From Octopus bimaculoides (taxonomy: Eukaryota): a stretch of DNA of 52,801 nucleotides. The stretch is taken from contig NC_068983.1 of the NCBI RefSeq assembly GCF_001194135.2, forward strand, positions 95,121,967 to 95,174,767, written 5' to 3'. Shown one piece after another: positions 129 through 51,475 of this stretch. Below the pieces are notes generated by a model, which saw only the letters and a list, made by a program, of their open reading frames with translations, made no database searches and was not told the DNA's origin. Position numbers and translations under genes: made by a program. Within the stretch, counting starts at the first letter, position 1; every line of letters starts with the position of its first letter.

Positions 129-995
129 TTTATTAGCCACGCAGAGCCAAATACAGAGGGGACAATACAATGTAGAACTTTTCTTTTCGAAAGAGAAAAA
201 AAATACGATCAAAAGGGATCGAAATCGTTTGGGACGTGTAAACAGCGAAATAACAATGTTCCGTTTGTAATAAAGTTCCCAAAAGGGGGAGTAAAAATAT
301 AATACAGATTAGGTTTATCCGTGACAAGAAAAGCCTACGAAAAAGACCACGGTAACCGCAGGCAGGCAAAGAAATACATGAGAACAAAGCGTGCTATCTC
401 TCTCTTTTGGATTTACAGGATCATGCTCAAAGTGGTTTCGTCATTTACGCGTACCATCTTTGCTACATTCACCCACCTTTTATTGAAACTTTCATGAGAC
501 AAAGCTTCCCTCTCTATTTTCACCTTCCTCTTCAAGTGATACTTGAAGAAGCTGATGAGCGATTGGCCAGAGAGGAAAGTGTTTGTCTCTAAACCTTTCG
601 TACGGGTCCACCACACACATTCTTTCACCATAGCCACCAGTACAATGAAAACTGCCTTGTCTTCCCGGCTAAAGGAAGGTGGCGAGGCAATATTCACGAT
701 AGACTCGGCCAATAATCGAATTCGCCCTACATGTGACAGCAGTCGTTCGGCATAAGCCCACAGGTCTGAAATGGTTGCACACTGCACGAGTACGTGCAGA
801 ACGGTTTCGTCGCTCTGACCGCATTTCGGGCAAGTCGGTCCGGTGTTTCTCGAACCGTACCTATAGAGCTTATTCCGAACGGGCAATGCTTCCCAATAAC
901 ACTGTCAGGTCAGGGATCTCTGGTGATTGTCCATAGGTCCCAGCCCGAAAGTGGTCCTGAAGATGCGGGTCAGGTGTTTCTCGTCGACGCCCATC
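129..995 (-). mobile_element. 5'-truncated Tx1/L1-clade LINE (ORF2 C-terminus, T-rich 3' UTR, AATAAA)
   Basis: Minus strand reads [43 protein letters not shown], the CCHC zf-RVT motif typical of L1/Tx1 ORF2. The 3' UTR ends GTGGCTAATAAA at 129. Confidence 0.85.
413..886 (-). pseudogene. Tx1/L1 ORF2 C-terminal fragment with CCHC zinc knuckle
   Basis: 157-aa ORF with CPKC-x-ETVLH-x-C. The frame continues upstream past a TGA at 905-907. Confidence 0.8.
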
Positions 996-4749: not shown

Positions 4750-4909
4750 CAGGGCCCGCTCAAGGCACCGGAAACTCGAGCAGTCACCTGGTGCGCCATG
4801 TGCTAGAGGGTGCAAGGAGGGTGTGACAAAGAAAATTTCCACGACCGTCAGCTTCTACACGCCGAAGTTCAGCTTGCTCAGGGCGTCAGCAACACTAAGG
4901 CCGGAGCTA
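4750..4909. mobile_element. decayed hAT-type MITE
   Basis: GC-rich 160 bp flanked by an 8-bp TSD (GATGGTAG / AATGGTAG). The ends CAGGGCCCGCTCAAGG and ACTAAGGCCGGAGCTA are only weakly complementary (8/16). Confidence 0.5.
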
Positions 4910-5123
4910 AATGGTAGGGTTCAAATACTTTGGCGGTCAACTTTGCTTTTCATCTTATCGGATTCGATTCAGTTTGATCAACTGCCGATCTGTGCCAACA
5001 GGAAATGAATGGATTTATATTGTGTAATAGAAGCTAAAAATATCCGCCCAACCGCTGAGACAGGTGAAATAGTACATCGGTCGATTTGAATACGCTGCTG
5101 TCGTGTCAATATTATCTAACTAC

Positions 5124-5465
5124 AAGGCGGTGAGCTGGCAGAATCGTTAGCACGCCGGACAAAATGTTTTGCGGCATTTCGTCCGTCCTTACGTTCTGCG
5201 TTTAAATTCCACCGAGGTAGGCTGTGCCTTTCACCCTTTCGAGATCGATAAATTAAGTACCAGTTGAGCACAGGGATCGATGTAACCGACTTAACCTTTC
5301 ACCGAAATTGCTGACCTTGTGTCAAATTTTAAAACCATTACCATTATTATTAAGGTGGCGAGCTGGCAGAATCGTTAGCACTTCAGGTAAAATTTTGAGT
5401 TCAAATTCCACCTCTGTTAACTGTTCCTTTCATCCTTTAGGAGTCGATAAAATAAGTACCAGTTT
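5124..5465 (+). mobile_element. two tandem SINE-B copies (5124-5340; 5352-5465 partial)
   Basis: AAGGCGGTGAGCTGGCAGAATCGTTAG (A box) .. GAGTTCAAATTCC (B box) .. TTTCATCCTTT..GATAAAATAAGTACCAG .. CCTTGTGTCAAATTTTAAAACC. Confidence 0.9.
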
Positions 5466-6019
5466 ATCATTGCCCGGGAATGAAATTGTTGCTTATTGGT
5501 ACTTGGAAACTTTTACGNNNNNNNNNNNNNNNNNNNNNNNNNNNNNNNNNNNNNNNNNNNNNNNNNNNNNNNNNNNNNNNNNNNNNNNNNNNNNNNNNNN
5601 NNNNNNNNNNNNNNNNNTGTGTGCATAAGTGACCGTGTGTGTGCTTCTCAACCTAGTAATAATACATGTATTATACATATGCACACACACATATATATAT
5701 ACATATATACATATCAATGTGCGTGCATACATACATACGTACAGACAGACACACACACACACACACACATACACACACATACGCAAGCACGCACAAACTT
5801 TCACACACATACATCGTTCGACTGATCGGTTGATCGCTCGATCGATTCATCCATCTCTCAACATATACATATACAAGCAAACTCAAACATACAAACACAC
5901 ACACACACAGAGGCTGCAAGGGGTATTTGAGGATATTTAATAATCAGAATATTGCTCTCCTCAAAACACATCAAAAGTCTTCAATATCTTTCCGATCCCC
6001 CATGGCAAATAAAATGCTA

Positions 6020-9371: not shown

Positions 9372-9591
9372 GGCGGCGAACTGGCAGAGTCGTTACCGCG
9401 CCGGGTAAAATGCTTAACGGCATTCCGTCTGTTCTTACGATCTGAGTTCAAATTCCACCCAGGTAAACTTTGCCTCTCATCCTTAAGGGATCGATAAAAT
9501 AAGTATCGGTTGAGTACTGGGGTCGATGTAATCGACTTAATCTCTCCTCCCGAACATGCTGGCCTTGTGTCAAAATTTGAAACCGAAATTT
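9372..9591 (+). mobile_element. full-length SINE-B with 13-bp TSD
   Basis: TCCGTAAAACTAA at 9359-9371 and 9592-9604. Confidence 0.92.
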
Positions 9592-10323
9592 TCCGTAAAA
9601 CTAACTCAGATGTCAATTTCTCTTAGAAATGTGAAGTTACTTTTCNNNNNNNNNNNNNNNNNNNNNNNNNNNNNNNNNNNNNNNNNNNNNNNNNNNNNNN
9701 NNNNNNNNNNNNNNNNNNNNNNNNNNNNNNNNNNNNNNNNNNNNNNNNNNNNNNNNNNNNNNNNNNNNNNNNNNNNNNNNNNNNNNNNNNNNNNNNNNNN
9801 NNNNNNNNNNNNNNNNNNNNNNNNNNNNNNNNNNNNNNNNNNNNNNNNNNNNNNNNNNNNNNNNNNNNNNNNNNNNNNNNNNNNNNNNNNNNNNNNNNNN
9901 NNNNNNNNNNNNNNNNNNNNNNNNNNNNNNNNNNNNNNNNNNNNNNNNNNNNNNNNNNNNNNNNNNNNNNNNNNNNNNNNNNNNNNNNNNNNNNNNNNNN
10001 NNNNNNNNNNNNNNNNNNNNNNNNNNNNNNNNNNNNNNNNNNNNNNNNNNNNNNNNNNNNNNNNNNNNNNNNNNNNNNNNNNNNNNNNNNNNNNNNNNNN
10101 NNNNNNNNNNNNNNNNNNNNNNNNNNNNNNNNNNNNNNNNNNNNNNNNNNNNNNNNNNNNNNNNNNNNNNNNNNNNNNNNNNNNNNNNNNNNNNNNNNNN
10201 NNNNNNNNNNNNNNNNNNNNNNNNNNNNNNNNNNNNNNNNNNNNNNNNNNNNNNNNNNNNNNNNNNNNNNNNNNNNNNNNNNNNNNNNNNNNNNNNNNNN
10301 NNNNNNNNNNNNNNNNNNNNNNN

Positions 10324-11474
10324 CTGGAAATAGATATTAATCAGATGCATTAATAAATTAACATTAAAATTTGTTTCGCCGTTGTTACAATCATCTGAAA
10401 CGGAACAATCAAAGCGCGATATTCGAGTAATTTTGCTATTCAACTTCAAAAAAGGACGTAAACAGCTGGAACTGATCGCAATATCAACGAAACGTTTGAT
10501 GAGGAAATGACCAGTGAATGGTCAGCTCAAAAATGGTTTAAAGGATTTCGCATTGGAGACCTGAGCCTTGAAGATCGTGACCTGAGCCTTGAAGATCTGT
10601 CATCGATGATGGTCAATTAAAGACCGTCATTGAAAAAAAATCCACATAAAACCACTCGAGAACTGGCAAAAGAAGTTAGCTAGAAATTGTCTGTAACCAT
10701 TTGTATGCGATCGGAAAATCAAAAAAGCTTGATAAATGGGTACCACACGATTTGAATGAAAATATGAAAATCAGAAAATGTGCAGATATGAAATTTGACC
10801 GCTGCATCTTCTCCATAAGCAGACCGATCCATTTCTCGACGGTGTCATAGTTTGGATTTTTTACAATAATAAAAAACGTTCTTCGCACTTGTTGGACTAG
10901 AATGAAGCATCGGAAACCTCCCCTAAACCTGAGCTCTTCAAAAAGAAGGTTATGGTGACTGTTTGGTGGTGTACTGCTGGACTCATCCACTATAACTTCT
11001 TAAAACTCGAAAAACCATTACTGCAGAAACATATTGCCATGAAATTGTCAAAATGAACGAAAAACTGCTACTCTTCTATCCCAGACTGTTCAACAAAAGA
11101 CGGCCAGTCATTCTCCATGACAATGCTCGACCACACGTTTCACTAATGATGCTCCAGATGATGTCTACGAAGCTTTCCCCCCTCCACCAGCTTAATCCCC
11201 AGACTTTTCTCCTACCGACTACCACTTTTTCAAGTACCTTGATGATTTCCTGCGAAAGAAAGTGTTCAAAAATCAAGCCGATGCTGAAAGTGCTTTCAAA
11301 GAGTTCATCAGCTCCAGATTTTTATGTTATCGGAATAAACAAACTTGTAACTCGTTGACAAAAATGTGTTGATTGTAATGGTAATTACTTTGATGAACAA
11401 AATTTCCGCATTGCTGAAATATATTAGGATGAATTTCATGTTTCAAAACGTTGCTTACGTTTTACTCAGCCTGA
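10324..11474 (+). mobile_element. mariner (DD34D, Hsmar1-like) transposon; left end lost in the gap
   Basis: Reads IRVILLFNFKKG..KWFKGFRIGDLSLED, KKLDKWVPH, KKVMVTVWW, ILHDNARPH, SPDFSPTDYHFF, QKCVDCNGNYFD. Right TIR (reverse complement TCAGGCTGAGTAAAACGTAAGCAACGTTTT) is followed by TA at 11475-11476. Confidence 0.92.
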
Positions 11475-11559: not shown

Positions 11560-12120
11560 AGGCAAAAATGAGTGGTTAGGTGATGTTACCTCTTTCAAGC
11601 CATTGGTTGAACAAATGTTTGCCCTAGCTTGAGTTTTATGGTATAAATCAAAAGTTTTGATCAATATTTTCTACTTAAGTAAGGAAAACTTAATAAATTT
11701 ACTAAAGTACTACTTATGATTACATAACGCTGGAATCCATTATATGAAAGTATAGCGATAATATTCAATGAATTTCTACAAAGACTACTGTCAAGGTCTA
11801 ACTGATTAAAGGGATGGAAACCAATATCGATATTAAAATAAAAATACCAAACATGCCCGAGCTTACCGGCTGATAACATAATCAACTAACATAGCTCATC
11901 AAGAAATAATAGTATCTTATGAAAGTGACATTAACGGTGTCAGAAGAGGTAAAGAACAGCTATTGTTAGGTCAAACAATTATTGAAGTTAGTCGGAAAGA
12001 AATGTTATGAATTGATTATAGAAAAGATTTCAGTACCATACAACGAGTCTAGATAAGGGAGACGGTATTAATGCAATATATTAACCGAGAAAATGTAGAG
12101 TAAAAAAGCTGTCTTACAAT
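11560..12120 (+). mobile_element. decayed R4/Dong-like LINE RT fragment
   Basis: GVRRGKEQLLLGQTII..ML*IDYRKDFS resembles the R4 RT motif GxKxQLLI..WIDYxKAFD. Confidence 0.55.
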
Positions 12121-12125
12121 TTATC

Positions 12126-12522
12126 CTTTTCTACTCGAGGCACAAGGCCCGAAAATTTGGGGGAGGGGCCAGTCGATTAGATTGACTCCAGTACGCAACT
12201 GGTACTTAATTTATCGACCCCGAAAGGATAAAAGGCAAAGTCTACCACAGCGGAAGTTGAACTCTGAACGTAAAGATAGACGAAATACCTATTTCTTTAC
12301 TGCCCACAAGGGGTTATACACAGAGGGGACAAACAAGAACAGACAAACAGATTAAGTCGATTATATCGACCCCAGTGCGTAACTGGTACTTATTTAATCA
12401 ACCCCGAAAGGATGAAAGGCAAAGTCGACCCTAGCGGAATTTGAACTCAGAACGCAGTGGCAGACGAAATACCGCTAAGCATTTCGCCCGGCGTGCTAAC
12501 GTTTCTGCCAGCTCGCCGCCTT
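12126..12522 (-). mobile_element. composite SINE-B: full unit with Tx1-like tail, then a 5'-truncated unit with AGTAGAAAAG tail
   Basis: Two copies of GATAAATTAAGTACCAGTT..TGGGGTCGA separated by TTTGTCCCCTCTGTGTATAACCCCTTGTGGGCAGTAAAGAAATA. Confidence 0.9.
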
Positions 12523-12819
12523 AGGAGACAATTTATCTGTGGGCCAGAGGTTAAGTGCATTGATGACAAACTCCACGACAACAGTTTTTTTTTTTTTTAT
12601 ATGCGGTCTAGAATTCTCTTATGTGTGCCATTATACGTAGCATCATCTGTGATGTGGAAACAGTATTCCATTGAAGGTCTCGCTTGAGTTTGGAAGGCAG
12701 TTTTTGCTAATGATGACTATTTAAGTAAGGCATTAGCTTACCAGAAAAATATTACTACTTTTAGCTTAATTTCATTTATGCATTGCCAACGTTCGCATTA
12801 ACCTCTGGTTAGACACATG

Positions 12820-19479: not shown

Positions 19480-19685
19480 AGGCGGCGAGCAGGCAAAAAT
19501 GTTAGCATGTCGCTTATAGCGTTTCGCCCGTCTTTACATTTTAAGTTCAAATTCCGTTGAGGTAGATTTTGCCTTTCATTCTTTCGGACTCGATAAAATA
19601 AGTACCAGTTGAGCACTGCGGTCGATATAATCAACCTACCTCATCCTTCTAAATTTCTGGCCTTGTGCCAAAATTTGAAACCATT
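19480..19685 (+). mobile_element. SINE-B
   Basis: Full head through the GGCCTTGTGCCAAAATTTGAAACC tail. Confidence 0.9.
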
Positions 19686-20722: not shown

Positions 20723-21261
20723 ACATCTCTTTACAGTCTATTTACACTCTGAGTTCAAATACCTCTTGTAATGCCTATAACATTCATCTTTCTTAGGTAA
20801 TACTAGTTATCTATTCTATTGATTTAATTGTAGCCTTGTGCGAATATTAGTTCTCACTTTTTCCAACACTTTATTTGTCACTTGTTTACATTTTGTATCT
20901 AATTTTATTTTATTAGTGAAATCCTGTATTTTACGGGCCGAGAAAATGGGAAATTGTTACGCTTCATAGTTTTTATTCTGTCCTTGTTCCATGATAATTA
21001 TTTAAATTGACATGTATTTGTGGCTTAGGGATTGAAAAAGCATTGGACATTACTCCTAGATTGTGGAACTTGCATATAACTGACATTTTGAATAAAATTT
21101 GAAAGAAAAGTCATACATTTATAACTCTGACTCAACTGAGGCGAAAATCAAGTGCGATATGTATTCTGCTTCTAATCGAAGCGATAAAAATAAACATTAA
21201 AACGTTCCCCTGAATGACGAAATACATATTAACTTTCGACATTATGATGATAATCATTATC

Positions 21262-21805
21262 ACGCCGGTAAAAAACGCTCAGCAGCATTTGTTCTGGTTT
21301 TACGTTCCGAGTTCAAAATACGCCGAAGTCGACTTTGCCTTTCATCCTTTCTGAATCGATAAAATAAGTACCAGTTCACCACTGAGACTGATGTAATCAA
21401 TTAGTCCCTAGCACCAACATTTCAGACACACTGCCTATAGTAGAAAGAATTATAATAATTTTAGAAAAGCGGTGTGCTTGCAGAATCGTTAGTATGTAGC
21501 AAAAGATGTGTAACGGCATTTCTTCCGTTTTTACGTTCTACGTTCAAATACTGACGTGGTTTAATTTGCCATTCATTCATTCGAGGTCGATAAAATAAGT
21601 ACCAGTTGAGCCCTGGTATGTATTTTATTGACCCTGAAAGGAAGAAAGACAAATTTGACCTCGGCTCTTTATGTTATGAATTCAAACACTACCGGTGTCA
21701 ATTTTATCTTCCATCCTTTCGGGTTCAATAAAATCAATACCAGTTGAACATTCGGGTCAATGTGATCAACTTAAAAATTTGTTGGCCTTGTGCCAAAACT
21801 TGAAA
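21262..21805 (+). mobile_element. three tandem SINE-B copies or fragments
   Basis: GATAAAATAAGTACCAG core recurs near 21360, 21590 and 21730. Confidence 0.8.
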
Positions 21806-23026: not shown

Positions 23027-23208
23027 TAATAATCTCTTCTACTCTAGGCACAAGGTCCGAAATTTTTGGGGAGAGGGCCAATCGATTAGATCGACGCCAG
23101 TACACAACTGGTACTTAATTTATCAACCCCGAAAGGATGAAAGGCAAAGTCAACCTCGGCGGAATTTGAATTCAGAACGTAGCGATGGGCGAAATACCAC
23201 TAAGCGTT
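22955..23208 (-). mobile_element. SINE-B (23033-23208) with a long (TAA)n tail tract (22955-23031)
   Basis: Reverse complement ends CCTTGTGCCTAGAGTAGAAGAG(ATT)n. Confidence 0.88.
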
Positions 23209-23379: not shown

Positions 23380-23540
23380 TTCTTTTTTTTTTATATTACT
23401 ATTGTCTGTTATGTATACTTCCCTTCGTTGTTTATTGTATACCATGTATACTTCCTTCTTTTGTCATCATCTCATTACATGTAAACCCTCACACTTTATA
23501 TTTGTCTTTGTATTGTCTCCTGGTGGCAAATAAAAGAAAT
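23380..23540 (+). mobile_element. possible Tx1/L1-type 3' UTR remnant
   Basis: T-rich tract ending GTGGCAAATAAAAGAAAT, like the end of the Tx1 copy at 45350. Confidence 0.4.
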
Positions 23541-23558
23541 CACTATTATTACTATTAT

Positions 23559-24028
23559 GTGGGAGAGCAGCGCATACCATCAAAGGGACACTGGGCTACA
23601 AATATACGAAGCCCAATATACGCGTCGTGACTACTTGTCTGATAAGGGCATACCAAGCACATGCATCATATATGCTCGACATGGTGATCACAAATCAAGA
23701 TAAACAGCATATGACCTTGCAGATGGAGCCCAGTTGGCATTTTCTTCACGTCGAGTAGTCCATCCTGCTCAAAAGGTCCCTGAATAAGGGTTGCATCATG
23801 GCTATGATGCTCTCACACTACTCCTGTTTGTGATCAGATATGCACATATCATCAGTCACTAAGGGACATGCTCAAATGGTTAAGGTCAAGCAACTCACAA
23901 GCAAATCTGTAGTTTTGAGCAGGATATTTGCTATAACCCACCTTTTACACCAAGACAAAACATATACGTGATAATATTTCAGTTAAAATCAGAATTCATG
24001 AGAATCACTGCTTGGTTCTACATCAGGA
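23559..24028 (-). mobile_element. unclassified non-coding retroposon-like element between (TAA)n tracts
   Basis: Complex ~470-bp block with no credible ORF, bounded by TAT/ATT repeats on both sides. Confidence 0.5.
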
Positions 24029-24097
<69 letters not shown>

Positions 24098-24118
24098 GTT
24101 TATTTTCATTATTATTAT
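24029..24118. repeat. (ATT)n microsatellite
   Basis: Direct reading. Confidence 0.95.
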
Positions 24119-24733
24119 CATTGCCTTTGCACAACTTCTAACGCTGAAGATGTATTACGNNNNNNNNNNNNNNNNNNNNNNNNNNNNNNNNNNNNNNNNN
24201 NNNNNNNNNNNNNNNNNNNNNNNNNNNNNNNNNNNNNNNNNNNNNNNNNNNNNNNNNNNNNNNNNNNNNNNNNNNNNNNNNNNNNNNNNNNNNNNNNNNN
24301 NNNNNNNNNNNNNNNNNNNNNNNNNNNNNNNNNNNNNNNNNNNNNNNNNNNNNNNNNNNNNNNNNNNNNNNNNNNNNNNNNNNNNNNNNNNNNNNNNNNN
24401 NNNNNNNNNNNNNNNNNNNNNNNNNNNNNNNNNNNNNNNNNNNNNNNNNNNNNNNNNNNNNNNNNNNNNNNNNNNNNNNNNNNNNNNNNNNNNNNNNNNN
24501 NNNNNNNNNNNNNNNNNNNNNNNNNNNNNNNNNNNNNNNNNNNNNNNNNNNNNNNNNNNNNNNNNNNNNNNNNNNNNNNNNNNNNNNNNNNNNNNNNNNN
24601 NNNNNNNNNNNNNNNNNNNNNNNNNNNNNNNNNNNNNNNNNNNNNNNNNNNNNNNNNNNNNNNNNNNNNNNNNNNNNNNNNNNNNNNNNNNNNNNNNNNN
24701 NNNNNNNNNNNNNNNNNNNNNNNNNNNNNTCCC

Positions 24734-24774
<41 letters not shown>

Positions 24775-25503
24775 ACTGCTGGCCTTGTGTTTATATTAGT
24801 AAACTAGCTATACAGTCGCAAGAAGCACGAGAAGCCAATAAAGTCACCGAAGAAAGGTCTCTTTGAATCTGCCGCAGGAGGTCATGCAGAAAGCGAACAG
24901 ATACCCGGTAATCTACCGATGTATGCGCGCCAAGGCTCCAAGTGTAGAGAGGCTAACACTCAGATAAGACCAATATGAAACGATAGAGGTCAGATAATCT
25001 CAGGAAAACTGAAGCAAGAAGCTACTCCACAACCTCTTCTAAGAGCAAAGATTTCACCCTGTACAATAGTGTATTAGCCGGCGATGGACGAGGGTCTGGT
25101 TGGGGGATGAGTCACTAGAAGTAAGTAACAAGCGGTTGACAGCGACTGTTTTGGCTCATGAAGATTTTAGAGATACGAAAGATAAAAAACGAAATTGGTC
25201 GTGGACGGACAAAGTGTTCATAGTCTAAGCAAACCAAGTAAGGATTGAAACCACCTCCGAACTGATCGAGCTAATAATGGAATTCAGCCATGTGTGGTGT
25301 AGAGGCAAAAAAATCTCCGATACCATATATGAGGTACCACAACCACCTAAAAGCCTCCTCGCAGGAAAAGACAAAATTGGGAAGCCTCTACCCTTTTTTG
25401 CTCTTTCACTTGCTTTAATCACTGCACTGCATCCCTGATGATTTATCATCTTGTAGAGTTAGTCGAATTAATATTTGTAATATTTGTAAGACCCCAGCAC
25501 TTA

Positions 25504-32482: not shown

Positions 32483-34149
32483 ACATACATACATACATAT
32501 ATATATATATATGAATGGAGGCCAGCACATCTAAAGAATCAAAGAGATTCAGAAATATTATCTGCAATCTCAGGGGATTAAGGTACATTAAAAAAAAATA
32601 ACGTCGACCACTAACGTGGACAATTAATGCGCTAGAAATAGATCACATCTTGTGTCTATTAAGACCTAAAATGTTCTCAACATGAAATATAGCAGCATAC
32701 CAAAAACGTGAGCGGGCAAGACATCTAAAATCACCTAAAAAAGCATTATTAAACAGGAACTAGTTTCGGATTTAACAAATTCTTACCATTTGTCTATTCC
32801 TCATCAGCCTGATTTGTAATTTAACCGTAATCATCAGAATCATATACAGAGTTGATTCTTTAGATGTGCTGGCCTCCTGATAATTGATCGATATTAANNN
32901 NNNNNNNNNNNNNNNNNNNNNNNNNNNNNNNNNNNNNNNNNNNNNNNNNNNNNNNNNNNNNNNNNNNNNNNNNNNNNNNNNNNNNNNNNNNNNNNNNNNN
33001 NNNNNNNNNNNNNNNNNNNNNNNNNNNNNNNNNNNNNNNNNNNNNNNNNNNNNNNNNNNNNNNNNNNNNNNNNNNNNNNNNNNNNNNNNNNNNNNNNNNN
33101 NNNNNNNNNNNNNNNNNNNNNNNNNNNNNNNNNNNNNNNNNNNNNNNNNNNNNNNNNNNNNNNNNNNNNNNNNNNNNNNNNNNNNNNNNNNNNNNNNNNN
33201 NNNNNNNNNNNNNNNNNNNNNNNNNNNNNNNNNNNNNNNNNNNNNNNNNNNNNNNNNNNNNNNNNNNNNNNNNNNNNNNNNNNNNNNNNNNNNNNNNNNN
33301 NNNNNNNNNNNNNNNNNNNNNNNNNNNNNNNNNNNNNNNNNNNNNNNNNNNNNNNNNNNNNNNNNNNNNNNNNNNNNNNNNNNNNNNNNNNNNNNNNNNN
33401 NNNNNNNNNNNNNNNNNNNNNNNNNNNNNNNNNNNNNNNNNNNNNNNNNNNNNNNNNNNNNNNNNNNNNNNNNNNNNNNNNNNNNNNNNNNNNNNNNNNN
33501 NNNNNNNNNNNNNNNNNNNNNNNNNNNNNNNNNNNNNNNNNNNNNNNNNNNNNNNNNNNNNNNNNNNNNNNNNNNNNNNNNNNNNNNNNNNNNNNNNNNN
33601 NNNNNNNNNNNNNNNNNNNNNNNNNNNNNNNNNNNNNNNNNNNNNNNNNNNNNNNNNNNNNNNNNNNNNNNNNNNNNNNNNNNNNNNNNNNNNNNNNNNN
33701 NNNNNNNNNNNNNNNNNNNNNNNNNNNNNNNNNNNNNNNNNNNNNNNNNNNNNNNNNNNNNNNNNNNTATATATATATATATATATATATGAACTCTCTC
33801 GTCGTCTCAACGAATGAGTTCAGCAAGACATGTTAAACAACCTTGACGATGAATATGTTTTTATGGGTATAGTTTATGCTGATCCAAACCTTGTCTCTCG
33901 TCCTTCAAATTTGTATTGGTCTGGTGAAACAAGTGCCTCAAGCCCAATAGTTATCAGGATGCAGTTACTCAGTTACTTTATCTAAACATGAGCCGCCGTA
34001 TCTTAATGACAGTAGAAAATCATATCACCACAAAAAGTAGACTAAACGTTACGAAATAGGAACATTTGTCAAGCTCTTGGAAAAGACAAAATCCCACGTT
34101 GTTGGTTTTATGTCTCAGAATATTTAACACATAAAGTAGAAGTAAAAAT

Positions 34150-38196: not shown

Positions 38197-38974
38197 CATA
38201 CATATATAAGTGCGTGTCTGTCTTTTTCTTTGGATTTGAGTTCGTCCCCTACCACCGCTTGACAACCGGCGTTAATGCGTTCACGTCCCCGTAACTTCAG
38301 CGGTTCGACAAAAGAAGTCAACAGGATAAGTATTAGACTTTAAAAAATAAGTACTGGGGTAGATTCGTTCGACTAAAAATTTTCAGGTCGGTTCTCCAGC
38401 ATGGCCGCACCCTAATAACTGAATCAAGTAAAAAATATAAGAAAGATATAAAACAGTATACACCTAAGTATTGTTTTATTAAATGGTATTTCCCATATTT
38501 TATCTCAGAGCAGTTAGTCATTAAGCAACGTTGGAAAATTAATGCTGTTATTCCCAGCAGTTTCTACTTTCGTAACCTTTGAAGCACAAGCACATGTACA
38601 AACATGTGCAGTTTTACTATTGTAAATACTGATTCTCATCTTTATGTCTCATTCATTTGCAAACGTATTGTGTATTTGAATTAATGACCTTAAATGTGTT
38701 AAATAAACGAATAATTTCCTGTAAAGAGCAGAATTTCATTGAAACTTAGTTTAATACTGTATCTTAATATTTAAGATCGTTACTGAGTAGAAGATACGAA
38801 GAACCAATTGATAAGTTAAAGGTTTGCATCCTGTATGGGTCTTACGTGTGTCTAAGGCCACAAATGCTGAGTTTTATTTCAGTCCAAGGCCATCCCTAAC
38901 AAAGCAAAACTACCACGACAAACCTGTGTTTTATTCAGACATTGTAATTATATATAGAATCACAGTATCGAATA

Positions 38975-39052
38975 TGACCATCCGATTTAATCCCTTTGTC
39001 TGTCCTCGTTTGTCCCCTCTATGTTTAGCCCCTTGTGGGCAATAAAGAAATA
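38975..39052 (+). mobile_element. isolated SINE-B tail of the Tx1-like type
   Basis: CGATTTAATCCCTTTGTCTGTCCTCGTTTGTCCCCTCTATGTTTAGCCCCTTGTGGGCAATAAAGAAATA; homologous to 12290-12360 (minus strand). Confidence 0.85.
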
Positions 39053-39189
39053 AGAATATGACGTTCCGCATAAAAAATGTGAAAAGGTACCAAAACAGGC
39101 TACTTTGTAAACCGATGACAAGAACCTCTGTATTCGTTGGCTATTAATCACCCTTACCTTTAATAATAATTGTTTCACATTTTGTCAGA

Positions 39190-39927
39190 AGACCGGGAAT
39201 TTTAGAGATCAATAACATCGATCCTAGTATTTGACTGATGCTATATTTTATGGAGTCCAGAAGGATGAAAGACAAAACTGACCTTGGCAGATTTTCAATT
39301 CAGAACGCAAGGAAGCGGGAACAATGTTGCAAAGCATTTTTCCAACGCTCTAACGATTCTGCCAGCTTGCTGCCTTATTAATGGTTTTTGATTTAGGTAC
39401 AAGGTCAGCAATTTTTGAGCGGTGAGTACTGTCGATTACAATGACCCTAGCACTTGACTGGTACTTTATTTTATGTACCTCGGAAGCACAGCAGACAAAA
39501 ATGACTTCAGCGCAATTTGACCTCAGAACGTAAAGAACCGTAACAAATATCACAAAGCGTGTTCTGACGCTTTAGCAATACTTCCAGCTCGAATCATAAT
39601 AATGATAATGGTTTCCAATTTTGGCACACGGCCAGTACATAAAGAGCAGGAAGAAATACCGCTAAGCATTTTCTCAACATTCTAGATAGTCTGCCAATCA
39701 ATCAACCTTTAATGATAGGTTCAAATTTTGGCACAGGGACAGTGGTTTTGAGGGGAGGGGTAAGTCGATTATATCGACCTCAGTGCTCAACCAGTACTTA
39801 TTTCATCGATCCCGAAAGGATGAAAGGCAAAATCGTTTTGGCGGAATTTGAACTCAGAACGTAAAAGCCGGACGAAATGCTGCAAAACATCTTACCCGGC
39901 GTGCTAACGATTCTGCCAGCTCGCCGC
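39190..39927 (-). mobile_element. head-to-tail array of 3-4 SINE-B copies
   Basis: Repeated GAACTCAGAACG / AACGATTCTGCCAGCT and TTTTGGCAC tails separated by TAA/TGA repeats. Confidence 0.85.
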
Positions 39928-45261: not shown

Positions 45262-45349
45262 TCGTGTTATTACTTCCCTTGGTGTAACAAACGGACAAAA
45301 CAGCAAAACTGTAGAAGCAGCCAGAATAATATTATAGACAATAATTTCT

Positions 45350-46200
45350 TTTATTGGCCACAAATCCCAAGATATTGAGGACTACATCAAAAGACGAAAT
45401 ACAACGCACACAAACGCTAAAAGTTAGGGCTTACATCGATCAAAAAGGGAAACAACAATAAAGATATGAAAATAGAATTCAGAAAATAAATAAATACATA
45501 AATGAATAAATAGTATCATTAATAGCGGGGCAGCCCCCACAAAAAGTCCCTCATTATTCTGTAGTCTCCAAGGCATTGGAGATGCTCTCTTCTATTTTTG
45601 TTTCTCCTATAAGAAGCATAATCAGAGTGGTCTCATTTAGCTTCACTAGTATTGCAACTCTTCCCTACCGCTGGCTAAACACACGAGAAGGCAACCTCTC
45701 CCTCTCTGCCTTCACCTTTCTCGTCAAATGATACTAAAGAGCTTGGCCAGATAGGAAAGCGTCTACCTTCAAACCTTTCAGACGAGTCCACAGTCACTAA
45801 ACAGGGAAATATTTACCTTCATTTTCTATCAAATGTAAACAGTGCGTCAATCTTTACCATATACTCGGCGGACAACGGGATTCGTCTTACACGAAATAGC
45901 AGCTATTCAACACAATCCCACAAGTCGCTAATGCACGGACTCTGAACGATTGCTTGCAGGACGGTTTCGTCCCCTGTCTGATTTTAGTTGTTGGCGCTTC
46001 CATTCCTAAAGAGCTTGTCACGAACAGGTTATACCCCACCTCTGTAGCACTACCATGCCATTGACTTTTGGAAGTTGTCTTGTCTACAATCTCCAACATG
46101 AAAGTCCTCCAGAAGAGACCACACAGACTGTTCTCGTCGATGCCACAGTCAATTCCAGGCTGTCATCGCCCATATTCTCAACTAATTCCTAATGGTAATC
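45350..46200 (-). mobile_element. Tx1/L1-type LINE 3' part, related to 129-995 and more diverged
   Basis: Across frameshifts reads GIDENSLCGLFWRTF..WQCY..PVRDKL..DETVLQAIVQ..ISDLW; ends GTGGCCAATAAAAGAAAT. Confidence 0.8.
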
Positions 46201-46899
46201 TTTAGTTGTCTTATTTATTTATTTATTTTTGCTAATAGCTTCGTTTAGCCACATTCTAGATGACAAACGCCCAATCTTTGTCTACGCTTCATCTATACCT
46301 ACAGCTCAGTCTAGGAGACGTGCAACGGAAAGACGTGTCGCACGAAAGATGCTTACACCAGATCACCCTCACTTTTGTCGTCGTCGTGAAGACATGCAGG
46401 TGCGTCAGCTTCAACTCGTGCCAGTACATCTTCAAAGACAGTATCCCAAGACCACGACGGAATGGGTGTTAGCAGTGACTGAATTTCTTTGTCAACGGAA
46501 CCTGACCATTCTAGAAGAGTTGGAAAAGCAAGCATTCCAATCTGGTCAGAGTTTTCATGAGACAAGTTACGCCAGAAGGTAGTACACCACCAACGGGGTA
46601 TATGAATTCACTACTTCCACCCGGATTTTCAGAGACAGCTTCCTTTCAGCCTAATTCTGTGTGAGATTGGCCATCGCTTATGTCCTCTTTCTGGTTCCTA
46701 TCCACCTGGAGGTCTGGACTATGAAAACTTTCATTGGACAGTGATTGTCATAGGTAAACATGGACTTGCCTCTCTGAGTGCCTAATTGCAAAACCACCGA
46801 TTTGTCCTGATTTTTGTGTCTTCCTGTACATATCTGCTATACTCTCAGTATAGTGTCGATCGGTTCTATATTTAAAGTATATACATCATTCCAGTGACG

Positions 46900-47200
46900 T
46901 CATCCGCATATGCAAACATAGCTTTCCTGTGATCTAGATCTAGCGTGATGCTCTTCAAACTCTCCATCCTTCACAGGAAAGGTTCCAACGCCTAAAGAGC
47001 CAAGAGAAGGGTAGCCTCGCCAGATACTTAAAGGTTCCAAGAAGTGGTCGTTCAACTTGACAACTGAGTAGATGCTGCTGTACAGTGTGGTGACCCCAAC
47101 CAGATGTGCTGTCACCCCCATCAACATTTCCTCCACAGGTTGAAGCTGTTCCTGTTGCTGAGGATGTTGTCACTGTCAGTGATGAAGATGACAGCTCTTA
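46900..47200 (+). other. orphan segment ending in a copy of the pogo acidic C-terminus
   Basis: 47097-47191 matches 44401-44495 at 89/95 with no gaps. Confidence 0.85.
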
Positions 47201-47900
47201 GGACAGCCGCTAGATAGTGACGGTTTACACTGTCGAATGCCTTGGACTGATCTAAACTGACCAGTGTTCCGCCAAAGCTAAATCTATTCCCGACCCGTTC
47301 TTTGACGTATCGCATGAGCTGGAGATTGTCGTGGATAGACTTATCAGGTATCGAGCAGGCTTGTGCGTTTTAGAATACACAACCGAAAACAAGTGCCAGT
47401 GTCTTGGCGAGCTCCTTTACTAAATCCATTGACACTGAGCTGAGCAGTTATACGTCTGAAATTTTCAGTCATATGCCTCTTGATCGGATCCTTTCTTAGC
47501 AGTGTCACTACTACCCGCTGGCTCTTCTTTGACTGGGAATGTTGTTGGCAGCTGCAAAGACAAGAGCGAACAAATCTGATATGTGATTATAGGTGATGGA
47601 GCTACCTTTGTGGGTGATAGAGCTGATTTACACTCAAAACATCGGCTCAGCACGTCTGCTACTTCCTCTATTGAAATCGGCTCCTCACAAGACTCAATTT
47701 CTGTGTCCGATGGGCATGGCAAACCGTCAAAATAATCCTCAAAGCCTGCTGTCTCAGGCATACCAGTCCTCGAAATCAGTTCGGCGAAGTGCAGTCAAAA
47801 CACTGCGCTCATCTGGCTGAACTAGGTGAGCACAGCTGCTGCACTCTGCCACAGATCAAATTCTATCTGTAGCTACAGCTAGGTGAAGTGAGTTCATCTA
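47198..47900 (-). mobile_element. Tx1/L1-type LINE RT N-terminal fragment
   Basis: FEDYFDGLP..CEEPISIEEVADVL..CKS, IPDKSIHDNLQLMRYV, LVSLDQSKAFDSV. Confidence 0.85.
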
Positions 47901-50120: not shown

Positions 50121-50519
50121 TAGTGATTTCTCCATTGACATTTCGCCATCTGTGTGTCTATCTACTGTCTTCATGCTAACTCAAAGGAAACATTGATTTT
50201 GAATGGTGTCCTTCAGAGATGTGTCTTGGAAATGTTACTGTTCGTAGTAACTCACTGATTCTGCTTATAGTGTCTCTCTTTGAATGACACTCTCACTCGC
50301 TATAGTGATACACAGACAACTAAGAACATTTGGGCTGTTGCAATAGCATCCATCTTATTGATCTGGGAGGTCTGTCAGCAGCATCAATCATACTGGTTTT
50401 GGAGGTTTATTAACTGCGTAAACCAGCCCAGTCCAAGAAGTCACATCTATCACATCGGTTTCTTCAGTCTGTGAGGACTCCTTTGAAAAAAGAAAAGAAA
50501 TTCTCTACATTCTCTACAT

Positions 50520-51475
50520 GAGTGACTGTGTGGTAAGTAGCTTGCTTACCAGCCACATGGTTCCGGGTCCAGTCCCACTGCGTGGCACCTTGGACGAGTG
50601 TCTTCTACTATTACCTCGGGCCGACCAAAGTCTTGTGAGTGGATTTGGTAGACGGAAACTGAAAGTGACGCGTCGTATATATGCATATATATATATACAT
50701 ACATACATACATACATACATACATACANNNNNNNNNNNNNNNNNNNNNNNNNNNNNNNNNNNNNNNNNNNNNNNNNNNNNNNNNNNNNNNNNNNNNNNNN
50801 NNNNNNNNNNNNNNNNNNNNNNNNNNNNNNNNNNNNNNNNNNNNNNNNNNNNNNNNNNNNNNNNNNNNNNNNNNNNNNNNNNNNNNNNNNNNNNNNNNNN
50901 NNNNNNNNNNNNNNNNNNNNNNNNNNNNNNNNNNNNNNNNNNNNNNNNNNNNNNNNNNNNNNNNNNNNNNNNNNNNNNNNNNNNNNNNNNNNNNNNNNNN
51001 NNNNNNNNNNNNNNNNNNNNNNNNNNNNNNNNNNNNNNNNNNNNNNNNNNNNNNNNNNNNNNNNNNNNNNNNNNNNNNNNNNNNNNNNNNNNNNNNNNNN
51101 NNNNNNNNNNNNNNNNNNNNNNNNNNNNNNNNNNNNNNNNNNNNNNNNNNNNNNNNNNATATATATATATATACATACATACACACATGCATATATATAT
51201 GTGTGTGTGCGTGTATATATATATATATATATATATATACACGCACACACACACATATATATGTATATGTTTGTGTGTCTGCGCTTGTCCTCTAACATCG
51301 CTTGACAACCGATGTTAGTGTGTTTACGGCCCCGTAGCTTAATGGTTCGGCAAAAGATAGAATAAGTACTAGGCTTACAAAGAATAAGTCCTGTGGTCGA
51401 TGTGTTCGACTAAAGGCGGTGCTCCAGCATGGCCGCAGTCAGATGACTAAAACGAATAAAAGAATAAAAGAAATA
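50520..51475 (+). mobile_element. SINE-A with expanded internal microsatellite collapsed into a gap
   Basis: Well-preserved head 50520-50690 and tail 51280-51475. Confidence 0.88.

Follow-up and report, generated by a model that had tools for sequence, protein, structure and literature searches.

A 3' tail shared by octopod SINEs and an L1-superclade LINE family points to a stringent-type SINE-LINE partnership

Near one edge of a 52,801-nt stretch of Octopus bimaculoides DNA (the window, repeat-rich eukaryotic DNA with assembly gaps that derives from a scaffold-level assembly), the last 36 nucleotides of a broken LINE resemble the tail of a SINE, which raises the question of whether that LINE family is the one that copies the SINE. 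L1-clade LINEs are textbook 'relaxed' recognisers of poly(A), and mammalian L1, the relaxed type that operates with Alu and B1, recognises poly(A) and has no other sequence in common with its SINEs. The original prediction for this locus was nonetheless of a SINE-LINE partnership with stringent 3'-end recognition, and it added that L1-clade tail pairs are uncommon. In a survey of 2012-13, SINEs with an L1 tail made up 3 of 58 pairs, all of them from plants or an alga and none from an animal (Ohshima 2012/2013; PMC3472496, PMC3747384). The mollusc pairs described so far have CR1, CR1-Zenon, L2 or Nimb partners. In O. vulgaris, SINEs reportedly account for about 11.6% of the genome, and discussions of how octopus genomes were reshuffled and of neural expression have repeatedly invoked them; no LINE partner of octopus SINEs is named in the open literature that was searched.

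The window holds about 20 copies of an octopus-type SINE and three copies of the LINE, each truncated or degraded and none intact. The elements that matter for the argument are the following.

45-129, no strand: (TCTA)n microsatellite, directly after the end of LINE copy 1.
129-164, minus: terminal 36 nt of LINE copy 1; model R1 match at 124-162 (E=1.4e-5).
129-997, minus: LINE copy 1, 5'-truncated, retaining ~190 aa of the ORF2 C-terminus, in which a zf-RVT domain lies (PF13966, E=1.5e-5).
12126-12289, minus: 5'-truncated SINE that bears tail A2, of the majority type, and adjoins the tail-B SINE at 12290-12522.
12290-12522, minus: full-length tail-B SINE, with tail B at about 12290-12354; model R1 match at 12291-12329 (E=7.6e-9).
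23400-23540 (5' limit approximate), plus: LINE fragment consisting of 3'UTR only, ending GTGGCAAATAAAAGAAAT at 23523-23540; model R1 match at 23502-23539 (E=6.8e-4).
38979-39053, plus: 5'-truncated tail-B SINE of 75 nt; model R1 match at 39013-39051 (E=4.9e-11).
45344-47700 (5' limit approximate), minus: LINE copy 2, a degraded relative in which the RT motifs SLDQSKAFDSV and FAYADDV can be read among many stops; its 3' end is GTGGCCAATAAAAGAAAT at 45344-45361.

The ORF2 remnant of LINE copy 1 is 72% identical to protein P0001. It closes with a stop codon at 413-415, one further in-frame stop lying upstream, and is followed by a 3'UTR of ~285 nt (129-412). Tail B designates the last ~65 nt of the SINE at 12290-12522, which are unlike the tail of most window SINE copies and are found on 2 of the ~20. 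As to tRNA-like features of the SINE heads, the window SINE gives no Rfam tRNA match, with a box-B-like GAGTTCAAATTCC visible, the head of the short Argonauta SINE introduced below scores 21.8 bits on the Rfam tRNA model (gathering score 29), and ARAGORN detected no tRNA-like SINE heads. As to the assembly gaps, a long two-strand 'ORF' at 32860-33826 was rejected as coding on inspection, the sequence being a run of N (from 32898 to ~33800), and a short N run lies near 5490 (within 5490-5599). Such long two-strand ORFs overlap gaps, and the same pattern at 9556-10449, 24012-24866 and 50514-51318 probably has the same origin.

Read on the minus strand from 164 to 129, LINE copy 1 ends in TGTCCCCTCTGTATTTGGCTCTGCGTGGCTAATAAA. 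As predicted, these 36 nt match without gaps 27 positions of the SINE tail at 39011-39046 (plus) and 25 positions of the SINE tail at 12296-12331 (minus). A 36-mer scan of both strands of the window (105 kb) gave no further site with 22 or more matches, and in 200 composition-preserving block shuffles the maximum was 24, none reaching 25. The coordinates and the matches hold; the copy that carries the tail at 39 kb is not a full SINE but the 75-nt truncated one. The ends of the second LINE copy (45350) and of the fragment at 23523-23540, which the prediction had noted as similar, also read as it gave them. A motif scan with the terminal motif GTGGNNANTAAA(N)GAAAT found four sites where shuffles led to an expectation of none, all four at retroposon 3' ends:

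12291-12307, minus: terminal motif.
23523-23540, plus: terminal motif.
39035-39051, plus: terminal motif.
45344-45361, minus: terminal motif.

Position 129 is probably not quite the end of the LINE. LINE copy 1 continues as TCTATC and then (TCTA)n, so that the element is likely to extend by a few more bases, into TCTAT.

Relatives of the window LINE were reached by protein searches with the ORF2 C-terminus, which led to O. sinensis (locus L004) and Argonauta hians (L005 and L008). The O. sinensis LINE belongs to the same family as the window LINE and ends ...TTGTCCCCCTCTATGTTTGGGCCCTTGTGGCTAATAAAGAAAT or ...GTATTGTCCCCCTCTATGTTTGGGCCCTTGTGGCTAATAAAGAAAT. The SINE tail at 39 kb matches this LINE at 40 of 47 positions (z=22), against 30 of 41 for LINE copy 1 of the same window. 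Being only 75% identical to the SINE tail, the window copy (129-164) is thus not its direct source; it is a diverged relative, and not the closest source of the tail. In Argonauta, L005 contains a near-intact LINE of ~5.8 kb (ORFs of 639, 543 and 592 aa; Exo_endo_phos, RVT_1 and zf-RVT domains; one CCHC knuckle in ORF1) with the same tail at its end, and L008 contains another LINE copy together with a 5'-truncated copy consisting of 3'UTR only, the identity of which was confirmed by alignment to LINE UTRs and which ends TTCTGTGTCGGCCCTTGTGGCTAATAAAGAAATCTATTT. Argonauta LINE and SINE ends alike read ...GAAATCTATTT. Two SINE families occur in the 42.8 kb of Argonauta DNA, one of ~150 nt with a weakly tRNA-like head and one of ~245 nt that is a homologue of the window SINE; both end ...TGTGT(T)CGGCCCTTGTGGCTAATAGAGAAATCTATTT, and their consensuses match the 3'UTR-only LINE copy of L008 at 43/49 and 43/50 positions. 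An identity above that of single copies had been set beforehand as a test of the partnership, and the figures moved in that direction, from 27/36 in the window to the values just given for O. sinensis and Argonauta. Because tail sharing is so much clearer in these two species, the LINE family very probably copies these SINEs, as far as can be judged from their sequences.

The tail was also followed through the Argonauta DNA, the window and L004, with 12 tail lineages as the basis of a covariance model. The model gave 32 matches in the 42.8 kb of Argonauta DNA, namely 4 LINE ends and 28 SINE ends, and every match with E<0.03 in the window and L004 lies at a SINE or LINE 3' end. Nine LINE 3' ends could be read (3 in the window, 1 in O. 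sinensis, 4 in Argonauta and 1 in an ENA contig), and the tail is present in all nine. Other loci were left out: L001 and L006 end before the tail, L002 and L003 hold an interrupted LINE, L010 is disrupted, L009 has ~113 nt of contig after the ORF, L015 ends in a GA repeat, and protein P0005 has no recorded contig. The tail of L011 is a diverged variant whose similarity is not significant. An exact-pattern DNA scan of JGI metagenome contigs found no tail, and a protein-pattern scan of the same metagenomes gave 65 pattern matches with no confirmed relative among them. Contigs with similar LINEs are present in JGI metagenome 3300045673 and among the metagenome assemblies of ENA (loci L006, L001 and L007). 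P0005, listed at NCBI as a protein of a Herbaspirillum sp. MAG, is 60-61% identical to the cephalopod LINE ORF2 and is probably encoded by host DNA binned into a bacterial genome.

How far the resemblance extends was determined from local alignments. Over the last 50 nt, SINE-LINE alignments reach z values of up to 22 and run to the last base of both elements, and at positions -130 to -46 no SINE-LINE pair beats shuffles; what the two share is thus confined to the last ~45-55 nt, with the similarity anchored at the 3' end of each, as the partnership reading had anticipated. A longer shared region of ~90 nt, back to the 'TCGATGTAA' box of SINE bodies and LINE UTRs, was considered and rejected, since the sequence upstream of the last 45 nt scores no better than shuffles. 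From 5' to 3', the tail consists of a pyrimidine-rich stretch (TGTCCCCTCT.TGT), a 4-bp hairpin and an A-rich terminus AAUAAAGAAAU, often followed by CUAUUU. It is selectively conserved among diverged LINEs, the rest of whose 3'UTR does not align. Between the LINEs of O. sinensis and Argonauta, identity is 48% in the ORF2 C-terminal protein, yet 42 of the last 47 nt agree (89%), and when the last ~115 nt of the two are compared by BLAST, no more than the terminal ~33 nt are aligned. Separately, the LINE 3'UTR contains another conserved box, CCCCCCTATTGGGGAATTTTT, at a distance of ~130-170 nt from its end (alignment A5, columns ~125-150); it is common to the Argonauta-type LINE copies (L005, L006, L007 and L008) and absent from the SINEs.

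The hairpin in the shared tail, a common stem-loop of the kind that the original prediction had envisaged, is predicted by RNAalifold as four base pairs closing the loop CUUGU. In the window it would be formed at the following positions.

135-148, minus: predicted hairpin of LINE copy 1, GGCT-CTGCGT-GGCT (fold).
12302-12314, minus: predicted hairpin of the full-length tail-B SINE, ACCC-CTTGT-GGGC (fold).
39028-39040, plus: hairpin of the truncated tail-B SINE, GCCC-CTTGT-GGGC.

Folding energies of single tails are indistinguishable from those of shuffles (z from +0.14 to -1.66), so that the case for the hairpin rests on covariation. Across the 12 lineages, 93.6% of the cells of the stem are paired, against 10-49% in slid controls, and the stem variants are GGCC/GGCU, GCCC/GGGC, GACC/GGUC, AGCC/GGCU, UGGC/GCCA and GGGC/GCCU. 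Three of the four stem pairs are altered on both sides, in a sample of 12 partly related sequences in which two of the compensated lineages are the tail-A consensuses, themselves of suggestive homology only. An AU-rich extension of the stem also beats the controls, in an uncertain register. With its natural compensatory variants, the putative hairpin offers a directly testable recognition element.

If one LINE copies both kinds of element, SINE insertions should resemble LINE insertions, and they have L1-like features. The truncated SINE at 38979-39053 is flanked by the 9-bp TSD GAATATGAC (38970-38978 and 39054-39062), a sequence found only there in the window. The 10-bp TSD GATAAATTGT, at 12528-12537 and 12116-12125 and at no other site in the window, encloses two SINEs placed head to tail, the tail-B copy 12290-12522 and the truncated tail-A2 copy 12126-12289. 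This arrangement suggests a single retrotransposition event with a template switch between two SINE RNAs, in which case one enzyme used both tails. The TSDs of Argonauta SINEs measure 7-14 bp (95th percentile of the null, 7), an L1-like length; for a full LINE there is a tentative 7-bp reading only. Poly(A) is absent from every SINE and LINE end read, and the SINE terminus, ...GAAAT(CTATTT), is that of the LINE, Argonauta ends of both kinds running on as CTATTT. SINE TSDs begin 0-9 nt after ...GAAAT, often with (C)TAT, a possible sign of microhomology linking the RNA terminus to its target.

The surroundings of the insertions deserve a few remarks of their own. Upstream of LINE copy 1, at 998-1246, lies a (CCTA)n array that grades into (TCTA)n, and the (TCTA)n array at 45-129 lies downstream; insertion into a microsatellite, as in microsatellite-specific Tx1 elements, and growth of the terminal TCTAT by slippage both fit this arrangement. 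Among the few copies for which target context could be read, several ends are followed by ATT repeats, and the O. sinensis copy is not. SINEs also form head-to-tail arrays. At 4890-5356 of Argonauta L005, three consecutive copies of ~150 nt each start immediately after the CTATTT of the previous one, and in the window, at 5124-5464, 21257-21774 and 39209-39927, copies are separated only by ATT repeats. Such arrays suggest that new SINE copies insert preferentially into existing tails.

To which clade does the LINE belong? It is assigned to the L1 superclade because of its ORF2 architecture (APE endonuclease, RT, zf-RVT) and because the closest solved structure to its ORF2 is human L1 ORF2p (E=5e-22), with R2 behind (1e-13). 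Within the superclade it is probably of the L1-Tx1 type, the only L1-like superfamily listed in Octopus annotations (PMC13282606, PMC8967140). Among the names of its protein-database matches there is no Tx1 or L1 label.

The explanation that I favour, and hold to be likely, is that the 36-nt match shows part of a 3' tail of ~45-55 nt common to an L1-superclade LINE family and to tRNA-type octopod SINEs. The ORF2 protein of the LINE would recognise the hairpin and the terminus of its own RNA, stringently and without poly(A), and target-primed reverse transcription would start at the terminus of the tail. Pol III transcripts of SINEs bearing the same tail would be recognised in trans and copied, and this copying would produce the 5'-truncated SINE copies and the 7-14-bp TSDs. 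The data thus speak for a stringent-type SINE-LINE tail partnership that is conserved across octopods, dominant in Argonauta and restricted to a minority SINE subfamily in the window. The step of the original prediction that goes furthest, mobilisation in trans with the 3' end being recognised stringently, has the standing of a candidate mechanism.

The position of the minority subfamily has to be weighed against that of the majority. Most window SINEs end ...TTTCTGGCCTTGTGCCAAAATTTGAAACCATTATT (tail A1) or ...TTTTCGGGCCTTGTGCCTAGAGTAGAAAAGATTATT (tail A2), examples of such 3' ends being:

19643-19681: 3' end of a tail-A SINE.
12127-12165: 3' end of a tail-A SINE.
23035-23073: 3' end of a tail-A SINE.

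Tail A and the LINE ends are only weakly similar (z<=5.8, over 16-25 nt), and the sequence examined (window, L004 and other loci) yielded no LINE with tail A at its end. In A1 as in A2 the CUUGU loop is preserved and the altered stem still pairs, and both may have diverged from the same LINE tail.

It could be argued that the tail match is a matter of history, the SINE tail having at one time come from this LINE family, the tail-B subfamily being dead in Octopus and SINE expansion there having proceeded through tail A with another partner, for example RTE, CR1 or Dong-R4. The distance between tail A and the LINE ends is what such a history would leave behind, and so is the rarity of tail B, which sits on so few window SINEs and on none in the 20.8 kb of O. 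sinensis DNA. Against it, the two window tail-B copies have clean TSDs and share 90% identity across 58 nt, the O. sinensis LINE tail matches at 85%, and 13 L1-Tx1 families of O. vulgaris are reported to have been active recently (PMC13282606). The compensated stem and intact loop of tail A, and the enclosure of a tail-B and a tail-A2 SINE within one TSD, with the single event that it suggests, also tell against a change of partner. I regard this explanation as unlikely.

A second alternative supposes that the apparent LINE ends are truncated SINEs inserted at LINE 3' ends, or a SINE tail captured by a LINE, so that the match would be uninformative on recognition. SINEs of this group do insert head to tail beside existing tails, as in the L005 arrays, and SINE copies truncated to 75 nt exist. 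In all nine LINE ends, however, the tail is contiguous to the UTR, with neither a TSD nor a junction between them, and each is a lineage-specific variant with fixed differences from the co-resident SINE consensus (in Argonauta, AATAAAG in the LINE and AATAGAG in the SINE), which makes this reading very improbable. Finally, a chance resemblance between low-complexity T/C-rich and A-rich ends, each with an AATAAA signal, could be feared for short sequences picked by eye, but it is refuted by the window scan, the shuffles, the invariable placing of the terminal motif and z values of up to 22 against independent LINE copies from other genomes.

The shared and conserved tail of the favoured partnership suggests that an L1-Tx1-type family drives at least one SINE subfamily in Octopus as well as the dominant Argonauta SINEs. 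Its bolder extension, that a single L1/Tx1-type LINE clade drives essentially all abundant octopod SINEs, tail A included, by way of the conserved CUUGU hairpin tail, is less likely than not. Were it true, the hairpin of tail A (GGGC-CUUGU-GCCU, UGGC-CUUGU-GCCA) would have co-evolved as a compensated form of the same hairpin, the SINEs driven by this clade would include the tail-A majority, which makes up about a tenth of Octopus genomes, and the engine of octopus SINE expansion would have a name. This clade would also provide the first animal L1-superclade LINE shown to recognise the 3' end in a stringent, structure-specific way.

Several known systems allow the octopod pair to be placed. With respect to Alu and B1, which like the octopod SINEs have an L1-superclade driver and TSDs of similar length, the difference lies at the 3' end: the relaxed type is defined by poly(A) ends with nothing else shared, and the octopod elements share a specific 45-nt tail and have no poly(A). 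The host group has its own history, octopus SINEs OR1, OR2 and OK having reportedly been described by Ohshima and Okada in 1994. These, and the mass of O. vulgaris elements listed as 'unclassified SINE' (PMC13282606), come from the same host group as the SINEs analysed here and are probably the same or related elements. The working criterion in the field for a tail pair is 35-61 bp of 72-95% identity within the end of the LINE 3'UTR, and the sequences of the octopod pair fall within these ranges. The closest parallel in form is UnaSINE1/UnaL2 of the eel, a stringent pair validated by a retrotransposition assay according to the account in PMC3747384 of Kajikawa and Okada (2002). Like the octopod pair, it has a common 3' tail of ~50-60 nt with a conserved stem-loop and, at its end, a short sequence or repeat other than poly(A), and in both cases recognition is attributed to the LINE RT; UnaL2, however, is of the L2 clade and assay-validated, whereas the octopod LINE has the L1-superclade architecture (APE EN, RT, zf-RVT) and its pairing is proposed here from sequence. 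The closest parallels in clade are ZmSINE2/3 with a monocot L1 (maize and sorghum) and SINEX-3_CR with L1-1_CR (Chlamydomonas), in which, as in octopods, an L1-clade partner has a conserved 3' stem-loop and a tail shared with the SINE. Those pairs, which account for all 3 L1-tail SINEs of the survey, belong to plants and one green alga and have poly(A) ends, whereas the octopod pair belongs to an animal and does not. A conserved 3' hairpin in an L1-superclade element of an animal would be relevant to whether stringent recognition is the ancestral state of the clade. A Tx1-type LINE has also been proposed to drive a SINE family in crocodilians, Tx1-Mar for SINEU (Kojima 2015, PMC4494074); there, the link is a common target-site preference together with snRNA-derived 5' heads, whereas in octopods it is the 3' tail. 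Tail sharing as such is long established, and the octopod case falls in a group of LINEs where it is rare.
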